Below, one piece after another: positions 28,668 to 60,789 of a DNA stretch of 64,000 nt (positions within the stretch are counted from its first letter, which is position 1; every line of letters begins with the position of its first letter). The notes under the pieces were generated by a model that was not told the DNA's origin, made no database searches, and worked only from the letters and a program-made list of their open reading frames with translations. The DNA lies in assembly GCA_002269645.1 (NCBI GenBank), contig NIVC01000010.1:2294001-2358000 (forward strand), written 5' to 3'. Source of the stretch: Macrostomum lignano. Lineage: Eukaryota. A program made the position numbers and the translations under genes.

Positions 28668-31600
28668 ATGGCTACAACAGGTTTCGCCAAGATTCTAATG
28701 TTGGTGCTAACTGCATCAACAGTTGGTGCGACTGCTGACAGACAGTCTTGCACCAACGGGCTGCACCTCTACCTGATAGTGCCGAGGTCCACTTCCTATT
28801 ATGTCAATGCGGTGCTGATCGAACCTGCTTACCAACTGGCTTGGAATAGGGTGGGCAGCGAGCTGTCAAACACCCCCAATGCTTCTCTGTTTCGCCTGCT
28901 GTATTCGAGAATGGAAACTAAGGCCATCTATGAGGACGTCAAGTGGTACAGGGAGGTGTCTCCGGCTGAGAGAAATGGAAGGCCCGGTCTGGAGACCGTT
29001 AATCCTTACTATTTGAACTACTGGATGAATCCGTATTTTTATAACATCTCCGTTGGGTGAGTAGGTGGTGCACCAGGGGGTAATTATCTGTAGACAATTA
29101 GCAGCGCTCACCTGTAATACTAGGGGTAATTATCTGTACGTAAATATAGAGCACTTAACCTGTACTGCTATGGGTAATTATCTGTAGATAAATCGAAGCA
29201 TTTACCTGTAATACTATGGCTAATTATCCTGTAGGTAAATAGGCCACTCACCTGTAATACTATGGGTAATTAACCTGTAGGTAAATAGGCTACTCACCTG
29301 TAATACTATGGGTAATTATCCTGTAAGTAAATAGAAGCATTCACCTGTAATACTATGGGTAATTATCCTGTAGGTAAATAGGCCACTCACCTGTAATACT
29401 ATGGGTAATTATCCTGTAAGTAAATAGAAGCATTCACCTGTAATACTATGGGTAATTATCCTGTAGGTAAACAGAAGTATTCATCTGTAATACTATGGGT
29501 AATCATCCTGTAGGTAAACAGAAGTATTCATCTGTAATACTAGGGGTAATTATCCTGTAGGTAAACAGAAGTATTCATCTGTAATACTATGGGTAATCAT
29601 CCTGTAGGTAAACAGAAGTATTCATCTGTAATACTAGGGGTAATTATCCTGTAGGTAAACAGAAGTATTCATCTGTAATACTAGGGGTAATTATCCTGTA
29701 GGTAAACAGAAGTATTCATCTGTAATACTAGGGGTAATCATCCTGTAGGTAAAAAGAAGTATTCATCTGTAATACTATGGGTAATTATCCTGTAGGTAAA
29801 CAGAAGTATTCATCTGTAATACTAGGGGTAATCATCCTGTAGGTAAACAGAAGTATTCATCTGTAATACTAGGGGTAATTATCCTGTAGGTAAACAGAAG
29901 TATTCATCTGTAATACTAGGGGTAATTATCCTGTAGGTAAACAGAAGTATTCATCTGTAATACTAGGGGTAATCATCCTGTAGGTAAACAGAAGTATTCA
30001 TCTGTAATACTAGGGGTAATCATCCTGTAGGTAAACAGAAGTATTCATCTGTAATACTAGGGGTAATTATCCTGTAGGTAAACAGAAATATTCATCTGTA
30101 ATACTAGGGGTAATTACCATTTGGCACAGTCTACACTACAGTAAAATCACCTGCGCAAGCCTGCTGCTGTTTGCTAAAAATAGCAAAGATACGGGCGTAT
30201 GAGGTCACATATTAACAAAAATGGTACATGTATGTCAGAGATAGGTATTTACTGTCTACAGTCCTTTAACCGTGTTACAGGATGATGCTTATTTATGCCT
30301 GACATCATCATGACAAACTGGATGATTGCGGAGTCCACTTGGATGACCGATTTTATTATACTGACTGAGGCCCGCTGGCCTTATCCTAGACGATCGAGAT
30401 TTAATCAATCTCCATCGAAAGCAACTTCTTGTTGCCTCTCAAGATGACCTGTCTGCTTCTCCTGTGTTGGATAGAAATATAATTTTGTTGTGGCACAGCC
30501 GCTAATACTGAAGGCTTCATGGATGACCTCATAGGATTAACTGGCACGACATGTTTATGAATATTTTTTGATGCTCCTCGCCTAGCTCTCCGGGCTGTTC
30601 GCTTGACTGGAGAAGGTCTGTCTGTCTGTCTGTCTGTCTGTCTGTCTGTCTGTCTGTCTGTCTGTGTGCCTGTCTGTCTGTCTGTCTGTCTGCCTGTCTG
30701 TCTGTCTGTCTGTCTGTCTGTCTGTCTGTCTGTCTGTCTGTCTGTCTGTCTGTTTGTCTGTCTGTCTGTTTGTCTGTCTGTCTGTTTGTCTGTCTGTCTG
30801 TCTGCCTGTCTGTCTGTCTGTCTGCCTGTCTGTCTGTCTATACTTCAGTAATTCTAGGACTCCCCATAACCAAAATCTGTTACGCACTTCAGACTTTGTT
30901 TCAACTCCTACATTCATGTTTCGTTCATAATCAGGCCAGAAACTTAAGAGAATTTTCAGCCCAGGATAAAAAGCTCTCCCACCATAGAGCCTTCAGCCCG
31001 GCCAGCCCAGCACGCTCTGTTTATCAAATGACAATTCGGGAGTAATTAGCAACGCAAATCACGTGCGAGCGAAGTCAGGTCGCTGCGCTGTATGAATGTA
31101 ATCAAAGTAAGAAATTAATTCATCTCCTTTTCTCCTTTCCTTATCTCTTTCGCCTTTTCATTTCCCTGGGGGTGGTTTTTTCTTTTCATCAGATGAGCTG
31201 TAAGAGCGTAAAATCCGCGAGACTTGGATAATTAATTGAAGCATCATCTCTCCTTACAGAAGCTGGAATGGGTAGGAGTGGAAAATTAATTTTTGGATCG
31301 CGGAAGCTGGCTCACCGCACACTCACGCTTAGGTCTGACTGATGCAGATTCGGAGTGAGCGCATCAACCTGTGCACTGACGTCTTGTGTGATAGGGAGAG
31401 TCTTGCGTGCCAGGCGGCCCAGGCTCGATTCCAAAATTGGAATCTCGGCTAGGCTCTGCTCGTGCAATTAACGCCTTTGAAGGCCAACCGCCAAGGCACA
31501 GTGAAGTGTACATGTCAGACGGTAAAAAAAGTTAGTGCCGCTGTACACTCCTGTGTGAGTGTGTGCCTGTGCGTATGACTGCGTACGTATCCGCGCGCTT

Positions 31601-58800: not shown

Positions 58801-60789
58801 ATTCCACTCCGAAATTTCCACTGTTTCCTAATCGGATTTCTCCAAGAGTGACTGCTGAAGGGAGGGACAAAATAGACGGTTTGAGTAAATAATGGAAATT
58901 CGATGTAACAAAATGGGAAGATATCGGATGGGGAACTTTACTAGTTGTGCTTGATGAAGCGGGGTGGTTGATTTTGATACAGAGCTTCCCAACGACTTTC
59001 TTTTTTCAGGTAAACGCGTGTCAGTCACTTTGAAGACTTCCCTTTTCAATTTGCTTCACCTTCTCAAACCCTGACCTGCTTAAATTGTATGGCTTCTGAA
59101 AAAATATAGGGCTGCAAAAATTTCTAGCGAAACTGAACTAGATATTAGCTACTTACAGTAGGCGGCTTGCAAAGTTTTTTATTAATTTGGAACTAACTAA
59201 TATCGAGCGTACATTTATATATCAAGGAATACTCAAGTAGGACGGGAAAGTACGTTTCTTATAAAATGTTTATGAGGCTGGTTTTGGCCGAAAACTGGTT
59301 ATGAGTCTGCCTTCTATCGAAAGCAATAACAAATTTTTAAATGAAAAAATGAAAACTTCCTAACTCCGTAGTGTATTTTTCGGCGAGAACCAGCTAGCCT
59401 CAACATTTTCTAAGAAAATTAGTATCCATTCCTACATTTACTTAAGTAGTCCTTGGTATATATACGAGTAAAAGGATGCTGTATTTCATTTGTGCGAGTG
59501 TGTTAAGAGTCGCAACCTTACCCCAAGTCATCTCTATAGTTCATCTGCCCTCGTCTCTGCTTAATCTGCTTTCTTTCCCTTTCTGTCCAGTTCAGTCTTG
59601 TTATTTTTATCTCTCTCCCTCGCTGTCTTCTGATTGGCTATTCAATCTCGCCTCCTCGAGCTCTCTATGGCCAAAACTTTGTTAACCGTTTAGGGCTATT
59701 AACTGGTCGGGAATGTCAGAAGCTTGCTTTTTGTTTATAAAAACACAAATAATAGTCTATGGTAGACGGTATAGTCTATGGTAGACGGTATAGTCTATGG
59801 TAGACGGTAATAGTCTATGGTAGACGGTATAGTCTATGGAAGACGGTAATAGTCTATGGTAGACGGTAATAGTCTATGGTAGACGGTATAGTCTATGGTA
59901 GACGGTATAGTCTATGGTAGACGGTATAGTCTATGGTAGACGGTATAGTCTATGGTAGACGGTAATAGTCTATGGTAGACGGTATAGTCTATGGTAGACG
60001 GTATAGTCTATGGTAGACGGTATAGTCTGGGGTAGACGGTAATAGTCTATGGTAGACGGTATAGTCTAGGGTAGACGGTATAGTCTAGGGTAGACGGTAA
60101 TAGTCTATGGTAGACGGTAATAGTCTATGGTAGACGGTATAGTCTATGGTAGACGGTAATAGTCTATGGTAGACGGCATAGTCTATGGTAGACGGCATAG
60201 TCTATGGTAGACGGTAATATATAGTCTATGGTCTATTGTCTATATGGATATATACACGTATAAATTCTATAAATAGATATACATAAAAATCCAGTTGCCA
60301 GAAGCTTGCTTGGATTTAAAGCAATCTTTAACTCTTGATTTTTGGACAATCACTGTTTGCTTCTTCGATTTACTGTAAAATACTATTAAAATGTTTCTTT
60401 CCTACTGCAAGTAATAACAACTTTCTTTCGCAAAAAAAATTGCAGAGTAAAATGGAACAAAGCGGTGGTGAGCATCGGCTCAGTGGAATCTGTTTTTCGC
60501 GACACAACCAAAATTCAATACATCAACAATATTTTTGTTCGAGTGAGCTTCGATGGCGCGGAATTGATGGAATCTATTCTAAGAATGATATTTCTTAGAA
60601 ATGGTTGGCAAAGGTTTTTCGGCTTGTTCAGTTTGAATTACGGCTACGCTAACGAAGGCTGCAACTTGCACATTATGGATTTGAATCGGATGCGCAAGGA
60701 GCTGGGCATTGAGGCCGAGTTCTTGAGCGTCAGCAGGCTTGATCAGCTGCCGATGGCGTTTCGTAGAAAGATCGCTGCCCAGTACTCCG
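55897..60789 (+). CDS. Receptor guanylyl cyclase/NPR-type ectodomain, N-terminal module 3; join(55897..56246,60446..60789), open at a phase-1 donor (60790)
   Basis: Signal peptide, LLALLPFNTTHQFRAELIQPSVPFAL, NSTCS, VDGFVGLGCP, then across a phase-2 intron KWNKAVVSIGS..F..FVRV and NGWQRF. Confidence 0.82.
56375..58412. repeat. Intronic 30-bp minisatellite (CTACATTATAATAGATCTATAGTGCTCTCC)
   Basis: About 65 copies. Confidence 0.97.
59752..60232. repeat. Intronic 19-20-bp minisatellite (TAGTCTATGGTAGACGGTA)
   Basis: Read directly. Confidence 0.96.

Follow-up and report, generated by a model that had tools for sequence, protein, structure and literature searches.

Receptor guanylyl cyclases are usually viewed as the products of single genes that each provide one ligand-binding domain, and the repertoires of these receptors in invertebrates, such as the gcy family of Caenorhabditis elegans, are attributed to gene duplication. 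A member of this family, gcy-28, is transcribed from different promoters, with gcy-28.c expressed broadly and gcy-28.d in a few neurons that include AIA, and the two isoforms were cloned with different primers at the ATG and the same reverse primer, which indicates a common 3′ end (PMC9249223). Here we describe three exon modules, m1, m2 and m3, in a 64-kb window (the whole stretch of DNA that was analyzed, positions 2,294,001 to 2,358,000 of the forward strand of contig NIVC01000010.1, with coordinates counted from its first base). We consider it likely that these are alternative, promoter-specific 5′ modules of one natriuretic peptide receptor (NPR)/gcy-28-type receptor gene. The proposed likeness of this locus to gcy-28, a receptor cyclase with the same family name, lies in the isoform-specific promoters and start codons and the common 3′ end of the latter.

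A more extensive counterpart is found in mollusc and nemertean RefSeq genes annotated as "ANP (atrial natriuretic peptide) receptor 1-like" or "gcy-28-like", which resemble the window locus in carrying divergent N-terminal modules with leaders of their own. We compared the RefSeq isoforms of Mercenaria mercenaria (four), Mytilus edulis (three), M. californianus, Mya arenaria (two) and Lineus longissimus (two). The C-terminal parts of these isoforms are identical over 841 to 893 aa, and the N-terminal parts, each with its own leader, comprise 223 to 267 aa and are 26 to 36% identical to one another. At the junction, S, T or R is followed by (V/I)VVLCA, where the first residue varies, as a codon split in phase 1 would lead one to expect. 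A search with one receptor of this family returned many isoforms per species, which fall into separate 90% clusters. Likewise, the genome of Gigantopelta aegis (CM027794.1, 32.23 to 32.28 Mb) holds at least four tandem modules that are followed by one set of constant ectodomain exons. A single constant set after the array, with one module per product, thus appears to be a pattern of these relatives, as distinct from one read in the window species.

The original prediction, made from the letters of the window, had treated this arrangement as unknown for receptor cyclases. That claim was overstated, as the arrangement is present in RefSeq annotation and as each of gcy-28.c and gcy-28.d has a promoter and a start codon of its own. 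Judged by sequence comparison, the window locus is a further instance of an arrangement that already exists, without a name, in mollusc and nemertean annotation.

Three tandem modules end at equivalent splice donors

All three modules are on the + strand, where they span positions 28668-33044 (m1, 268 aa), 43947-44754 (m2, 269 aa) and 55897-60789 (m3, 231 aa). Their exons and upstream regions are given in Table 1, in which, as in the text, a caret marks a splice point. The proposal that each module carries its own ATG and hydrophobic leader held when coordinates and reading frames were checked against the sequence and its open reading frames (ORFs): every N-terminus consists of an ATG and a hydrophobic 12-mer with a Kyte-Doolittle mean of 2.1 to 2.7. 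The predicted equivalence of the final donors was likewise borne out, given that those at 33044, 44754 and 60789 are all in phase 1, all follow a Ser codon and all lie at the same aligned position. The window therefore displays two hallmarks of variable-first-exon loci, namely tandem homologous units on the same strand and donors of the same phase without a private constant exon.

The term "variable first exon" is apt for m2, which is one exon, and has to be given up for m1 and m3. The latter are two-exon units whose internal introns (3.6 kb in m1 and 4.2 kb in m3) consist largely of tandem repeats. Both internal junctions are confirmed by collinear proteins of Macrostomum lignano, in which NVSAGRQCIHAIFGP corresponds to NISVG^... 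of m1 in the window and QYSNAIWNKPVVSIG of P0001 to QFSG^VKWNKAVVSIG of m3 (designations beginning with P denote database proteins).

The three 300-bp stretches upstream of the modules contain 6 CCAAT or ATTGG motifs where about 2.1 would be expected, an enrichment of about 3-fold. The presence of CCAAT boxes upstream of each module, which had been noted before, is thus real, and it is a weak signal and the sole promoter hint at the locus. No TATA box was seen in the putative promoter of m1 (28368-28667). We infer from position that the three stretches could function as promoters.

A relative's RNA-derived contig joins a module to a constant half at the same donor

The splice proposed for the window can be read in Logan contig L001 (1677 nt, run SRR28338163), which encodes protein P0004. 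This contig is taken to be derived from RNA because it has a 5′ untranslated region, lacks internal introns and ends at its 3′ side in a retained intron (...cag^ggtgagtaa). Its sequence passes from an m2-like module into a constant half exactly at the position of the window's donor, with the junction ...RIGNKLS^VVVLCADPDTVREIMIKA... and the split codon tcg g^tt; the longer read is ...ERIGNKLS^VVVLCADPDTVREIMIKAQELGFINGEYVFFNIDLF..., and the constant half begins with VVVLCADPD....

The constant half of P0004 is 60 to 66% identical to mollusc, annelid and hemichordate receptors that contain Pkinase (PF07714) and Guanylate_cyc (PF00211) domains and are named "atrial natriuretic peptide receptor 1-like isoform X2...X8" or "gcy-28-like". 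The mollusc RefSeq proteins described above fall within this range, which places them in the same family as the flatworm protein. On the strength of this identity, the product of the window locus would also be expected to possess transmembrane, kinase-homology and cyclase domains.

The RefSeq sets and the window locus differ in what can be seen of them, since constant exons are annotated in the former and modules alone are visible in the latter. Furthermore, the flatworm modules are more divergent than those of the RefSeq genes: m2 is below Pfam detection, m1 lacks the cysteine of a conserved GPxC motif, and two of the modules have an internal intron. Among flatworm modules, only a "proximal" module of M. 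lignano resembles the widespread type that ends in ...ASLxxR^I.

The module types recur in gene models of Macrostomum lignano

Among 1.84 billion representative proteins, a profile search picked out 270 matches. A homology search with m3 gave no protein match, not even to itself, and the genome of the window thus seems to be unannotated in the collection searched. Most of these are entries of 230 to 300 aa that end just past the motif ...(V/I)G..(Y/F)(S/G)G^K, and their sequences mark them as ORF calls that read through the module donor. The top matches are all M. lignano models. P0001 contains an m3-like module, P0002 and P0006 contain m1-like modules, and in P0003 an m2-like module precedes an m3-like one. 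P0151 holds a fourth, "proximal" module and the second half of the ectodomain. In P0002, m1-like exons lie ahead of a second ectodomain half that is the same, residue for residue, as that of P0151.

The reciprocal best match of m1 is an M. lignano m1-like module (45% identity) and that of m3 is an M. lignano m3-like module (55%). For m2, the reciprocal best match is in P0004 (m2-like module, 34%) and the next is in M. lignano (m2-like module, 31%). Because these reciprocal best matches all have intact frames, the modules appear to represent conserved types rather than relics. The array in the window is, by the same comparisons, orthologous to the array represented by the M. lignano models and has the same order, with m2 before m3 and the constant half preceded by an m1-like module. 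On this reading, the window would come from a relative of Macrostomum, and the module types would predate the separation of the species.

Misassembly and chance ORFs were also considered as sources of the modules and were ruled out, as each of the three module types has a reciprocal best match in M. lignano.

Public protein sets mishandle clusters of this kind, as seen in P0151, P0002, P0003, P0005, P0007, P0009, P0012 and about 130 entries of 230 to 300 aa. Lone modules are called "ANF_receptor domain-containing" or "NPR3-like" proteins with read-through of the donor, and neighboring modules are fused serially.

Each module encodes half of an NPR-type ectodomain

Each module had been predicted to encode a divergent ANF_receptor-type domain. 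Taken singly, the modules give weak evidence for this domain. The scores with Pfam ANF_receptor are 22.5 bits for m1 exon b and 24.5 bits for m3 exon a, both under the cut-off of 25.4 bits, and the Pfam scan gave no ANF_receptor match for m2. Pairwise identity among the three modules is about 20%, and BLAST scarcely connects them, such that their homology rests on a common profile and on shared relatives. It is through this profile that the domain assignment stands: the three-module profile matches the NPR-C ectodomain with E = 1.4e-10 (44 bits), and NPR-A far more weakly. For a profile built from m2 and its two nearest relatives, NPR-C was again the top match in PDB (E = 0.016), and a search of PDB with the m2 sequence alone gave only noise. 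In an hhalign comparison, the m2-type profile aligned weakly with one mollusc isoform (probability 6%, E 0.006), yet the alignment is collinear. Collectively, these matches suggest an ANF_receptor (type I periplasmic-binding-fold) ectodomain, of which the window contains the first half.

An AlphaFold model of P0004, comprising the m2-like module and the constant half, was obtained from a 55-sequence alignment with a predicted local distance difference test score of 84.3 and a predicted template modeling score of 0.84. The model superposes over its full length on ANP-receptor and NPR-C ectodomains (1dp4, 1t34, 8tg9 and 1yk0) with E values of 5e-35 to 1e-31 and template modeling scores, normalized to the target, of 0.84 to 0.90. 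As modeled, a module and the constant half form one complete NPR-type ectodomain, and a module alone is therefore predicted to be half a domain.

Two peculiarities set the m1 type apart. Its counterpart of the conserved GPxC motif has no cysteine (FFGPLTDY in the window and IFGPTIDY in M. lignano), and because of this absence one of the usual disulfides of the ectodomain is probably missing. It also has an insert that is rich in Y, W and N.

Constant exons are absent from the window

The original prediction had found no other receptor exons between or after the modules, and further searches agree. A Pfam scan of all + strand ORFs of at least 35 aa in positions 33000-64000 revealed no kinase or cyclase domains. 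When 314 relatives, over 150 of them full-length receptor cyclases, were used as tblastn queries against both strands, the only matches were the five module exons, and neither this search nor Pfam found constant ectodomain, transmembrane, kinase-homology or cyclase exons in the 64-kb window. The first constant exon of the NPR/gcy-28-type family is about 70% identical across phyla and was found at once in other loci; for this reason, its absence from the window is real. Private constant exons that might have been overlooked earlier were ruled out by the same 314 queries, which found none.

Downstream of m1, at 33503-33567 (+), there is an acceptor with a good pyrimidine tract (tttttcttgcttcag^). 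It is compatible with the last donor of m1 (phase 1), and its use would lengthen the reading frame by 21 codons up to a stop. No homolog backs this segment as a private terminal exon of m1.

Proposed use of the modules and alternative explanations

We propose that transcription starts upstream of one module and that the last phase-1 donor of this module would be spliced, across any modules downstream, to a single acceptor past base 64000. Transcripts from m1 would additionally splice over an antisense sodium channel gene of the ASC type. The constant exon would supply the last two bases of the split codon (Val, Ile or Phe), followed by ...VVLCADPDTVREIMIKA...; if it starts with TT as in L001, the codon would be t^tt (Phe) after m1 and g^tt (Val) after m2 or m3. 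Each module would contribute a signal peptide and the first 200 to 240 or so residues of a ligand-binding ectodomain of the NPR type. From the shared exons would come its second half and, by homology, the transmembrane helix, the kinase-homology domain and the guanylyl cyclase domain. The outcome would be one signaling body with several cell-type-selectable ligand-binding halves, where the choice of promoter determines the head.

The idea that alternative 5′ modules swap the ligand-binding half of one receptor had already been put forward, and it is supported by the L001 junction, the module order of M. lignano and the RefSeq isoform sets. This support is comparative rather than direct. The combinatorial repertoire that had been envisaged along with it would go further than the relatives, in which each transcript has one module. 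The locus itself shows the anatomy of the modules, a donor phase common to all three, no private constant exons, and orthology to M. lignano modules. Relatives provide the splice, the complete fold and the precedent of one body with many heads, which by sequence similarity may be extended to the window. A shared acceptor, separate promoters, the use of one module per transcript and a cyclase domain would follow at this locus if it operates as its relatives do.

Several points weigh against this interpretation. The shared acceptor and all constant exons would lie beyond base 64000, outside the window, and the use of a common acceptor, like the use of any donor at this locus, is presumed from the sequence. 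A complete gene for the ASC channel on the opposite strand (35935-39274) would sit within the intron that follows m1. None of the flatworm sequences retrieved carries a kinase or cyclase domain on its constant half. The m2-like module of L001, on which the splice is seen, is just 34% identical to m2. The M. lignano models establish the order and strand of the modules but do not prove splicing, because they are automatic and because P0002 uses a different donor, fusing an m1-like module to part of another module. Finally, the division of one bilobed domain into variable and constant parts would require structural compatibility between them, which has been modeled for the m2 type only.

The main alternative to our proposal retains the architecture and replaces the body with one like that of NPR-C, in which the ectodomain is followed by a transmembrane segment and a short tail without kinase-homology or cyclase domains, so that the cluster would diversify a receptor of the clearance or decoy type instead of a cyclase. 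The preference of the three-module profile for NPR-C over NPR-A favors this reading, as does the name NPR3 given to the tandem-module model of Branchiostoma (amphioxus). In Gigantopelta, there is no transmembrane, kinase or cyclase exon within 16 kb past the constant ectodomain exons, and this also agrees with a short body, although the genes of relatives have long introns and span 70 to 320 kb (320 kb in Haliotis rubra). The retrieved flatworm proteins P0002, P0151 and P0004 all end where the ectodomain ends, but L001 terminates in a retained intron rather than at a natural C-terminus, and the constant half of P0004 is nearest to proteins with both kinase and cyclase domains. Moreover, the RefSeq isoform sets that share the (V/I)VVLCA junction are all full cyclases. 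We therefore judge a body of the NPR-C kind to be unlikely.

Three other explanations deny that one body is shared by alternative heads, and they remain improbable even when combined. The modules might be independent short genes or decaying duplicates of a first exon, for which read-through of the donor or a private terminal exon would produce a secreted half-domain or nothing functional. Stops lie 35 to 107 bases past each donor (33151, 44789 and 60836), the acceptor at 33503 is compatible in phase, and many database entries of 230 to 300 aa match such ORFs; these entries, however, stem from ORF calling or partial models, and each module that can be followed in a transcript or a RefSeq model continues into the constant half. 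Half of a bilobed fold of the periplasmic-binding type is unlikely to be stable alone. Given also that the module types are intact in M. lignano, with the same donor position and 31 to 55% identity, we assign a low probability to this explanation. We give still less credence to the serial splicing of modules into one mRNA, which would yield a protein with several half-ectodomains in tandem. Models with two or three modules in series do exist in M. lignano (P0003), Bulinus (P0005), Branchiostoma (P0007), Limulus (P0009) and Batillaria (P0012), and an in-frame AG can be read within the leader of m3. Such splicing would bury the ATG and hydrophobic leader of each module inside the protein, and the RefSeq isoforms and L001 carry one module per product. 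The serial models look instead like ab initio fusions, in that the N-terminus of P0151 is a translated minisatellite and the points where modules meet in P0002 and P0003 are not equivalent. Least credible of all is a set of separate, complete receptor genes, one per module, that are interleaved or nested and have all their other exons beyond the window. Nothing specific speaks for this arrangement, which would call for three downstream bodies of about 840 aa each along with three overlapping transcription units. Every relative examined has one constant set after its array, and M. lignano P0002 and P0151 have identical constant halves.

Genomic neighborhood

The window is metazoan sequence that is extraordinarily rich in minisatellites (Table 1). 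Arrays with units of 14 to 47 bp occupy most introns and intergenic spaces, and they yield many long spurious ORFs. Because the BAHCC1/TNRC18-like gene ends at 25725, 2.9 kb upstream of m1, this module is probably the first (most distal) of the array. The ASC/DEG/ENaC-type channel gene is situated between m1 and m2, and its own intron is filled by a minisatellite.

Two features near the left end of the window are of less certain nature. A 71-aa ORF matches the C-terminal part of a transposase domain and is, by this match, probably a transposon-relic fragment in an AT-rich island (12 to 16 kb, GC content 28 to 39%). Two charged, alanine-rich and coiled-coil-like ORFs that flank a 24-bp minisatellite gave no Pfam match, and they may be exons of one gene.

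Table 1. Coordinates of the modules and neighboring features in the 64-kb window
Feature	Position	Strand	Details
Putative promoter/5′ region of m1	28368-28667	+	CCAAT 28519, ATTGG 28540 (-149 and -128 from ATG)
m1 exon a (ATG, hydrophobic leader, ectodomain start)	28668-29056	+	ORF; donor gg^GTGAGT, phase 2; 42% identity to M. lignano P0002 residues 18-106
m1 internal intron, mostly minisatellites	29057-32628	+	Arrays 29108-30116 (47-bp unit), 30616-30839 (GTCT), 31716-32577 (14-bp unit)
m1 exon b	32629-33044	+	Acceptor ...cgcag^c; donor agct^GTGAGT, phase 1, after ...VGSGKS; 46% identity to P0002 residues 109-231
Putative promoter/5′ region of m2	43647-43946	+	ATTGG 43752 (-195 from ATG)
m2, one exon	43947-44754	+	ORF; donor tccg^GTAAGA, phase 1, after ...VSTKFS; 34% identity over 258 aa to P0004, 31% to m2-like part of M. 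lignano P0003
Putative promoter/5′ region of m3	55597-55896	+	CCAAT or ATTGG at 55693, 55702, 55723
m3 exon a (ATG, leader, ectodomain start)	55897-56246	+	Donor gg^GTAAGT, phase 2; 50% identity to M. lignano P0001 and P0003
m3 internal intron, mostly minisatellites	56247-60445	+	Arrays 56426-58421 (30-bp unit), 59750-60219 (19-bp unit)
m3 exon b	60446-60789	+	Acceptor ttgcag^a; donor tccg^GTGAGG, phase 1, after ...IAAQYS; 55% identity to P0001 residues 100-224
Minisatellite array, 16/32-bp	7-8898		Occupies first 8.9 kb; strong GC and AT skew
ORFs, charged/alanine-rich, coiled-coil-like	9298-9660, 10487-10861	+	Flank 24-bp minisatellite
71-aa ORF, probable transposon-relic fragment	13553-13768	+	C-terminal part of ISXO2/IS1595-like DDE transposase domain, E = 4e-9
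TRAPPC4/synbindin gene, two exons	16762-17615	+	Sybindin domain, E = 1.9e-34
BAHCC1/TNRC18-like chromatin-reader gene, 3′ part	21447-25725	+	SH3_TNRC18, BAHCC1-like Tudor, BAH; follows long Q/S-rich ORF
Minisatellite within BAHCC1/TNRC18-like gene	22776-23975		30-bp unit
ASC/DEG/ENaC-type sodium channel gene, complete, two exons	35935-36939, 38306-39274	minus	Pfam ASC at positions 1-249 and 269-454, E ~1e-21 each
ASC gene intron	~36940-38305	minus	16-bp minisatellite 37009-38094
Further minisatellite arrays (about 20), examples	9700-10453, 17844-18790, 34484-35965, 41222-42607, 46235-47053, 54192-55136

Significance and comparison with known systems

Our searches uncovered no publication that describes a variable-first-exon cluster for a receptor guanylyl cyclase, which is weak evidence given that subscription journals were mostly uncovered. 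We see an even chance that the arrangement is an old, bilaterian-wide system without a name in the literature, in which one NPR/gcy-28-type gene carries an orthologous array of separately promoted half-domains. Such a system would apply the solution of the protocadherins and UGT1A to a cyclase that serves as a peptide receptor or chemoreceptor. As part of this reading, the flatworm array has diverged so far in sequence, with m2 below Pfam detection, that each module would probably see a different ligand in a different cell type. Signs of such a system include the retention of module types between species and of the ...ASLxxR^I type between phyla. The latter type shows 69% identity between bivalves and 45% between mollusc and nemertean, and it is the type that the M. 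lignano proximal module matches best. Tandem modules are likewise present in gastropods, bivalves, a nemertean and flatworms and in models from horseshoe crab and amphioxus.

If one gene can mount several divergent ligand-binding halves on a shared signaling body by promoter choice, the repertoire of receptors is larger than counts of receptor cyclase genes suggest, and many short proteins listed as "ANF_receptor domain-containing" or "NPR3-like" are mis-split modules of clusters. The ligand specificity and cell-type expression of the modules would be testable in Macrostomum, in oysters and with C. elegans gcy-28. Exon swapping that divides a single bilobed domain at its middle is rare, and the locus would also be an instance of it.

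Vertebrate NPR1 (GC-A) and NPR3 (NPR-C) have the same fold as the modeled combination of module and constant half, and they are about 25% identical to the modules. The large first coding exon of vertebrate NPR genes ends at about the position of the module donor. To our knowledge, these genes have one first exon each, and the diversity of vertebrate receptors arises through separate genes.

The clustered protocadherins and UGT1A offer the nearest parallels in gene organization. They encode unrelated proteins, and at the window locus the cut between variable and constant parts would run through the middle of a bilobed domain, not between domains. Some units in the window comprise two exons, and the array is small, with three modules and at least one more expected. 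The two systems nevertheless share with this locus tandem, homologous 5′ units on the same strand that have upstream regions of their own and donors of a common phase. The single downstream set of constant exons in protocadherin and UGT1A clusters has its counterpart in relatives of the window locus. Finally, as in UGT1A, the variable part would be the one that holds specificity for the ligand or substrate.

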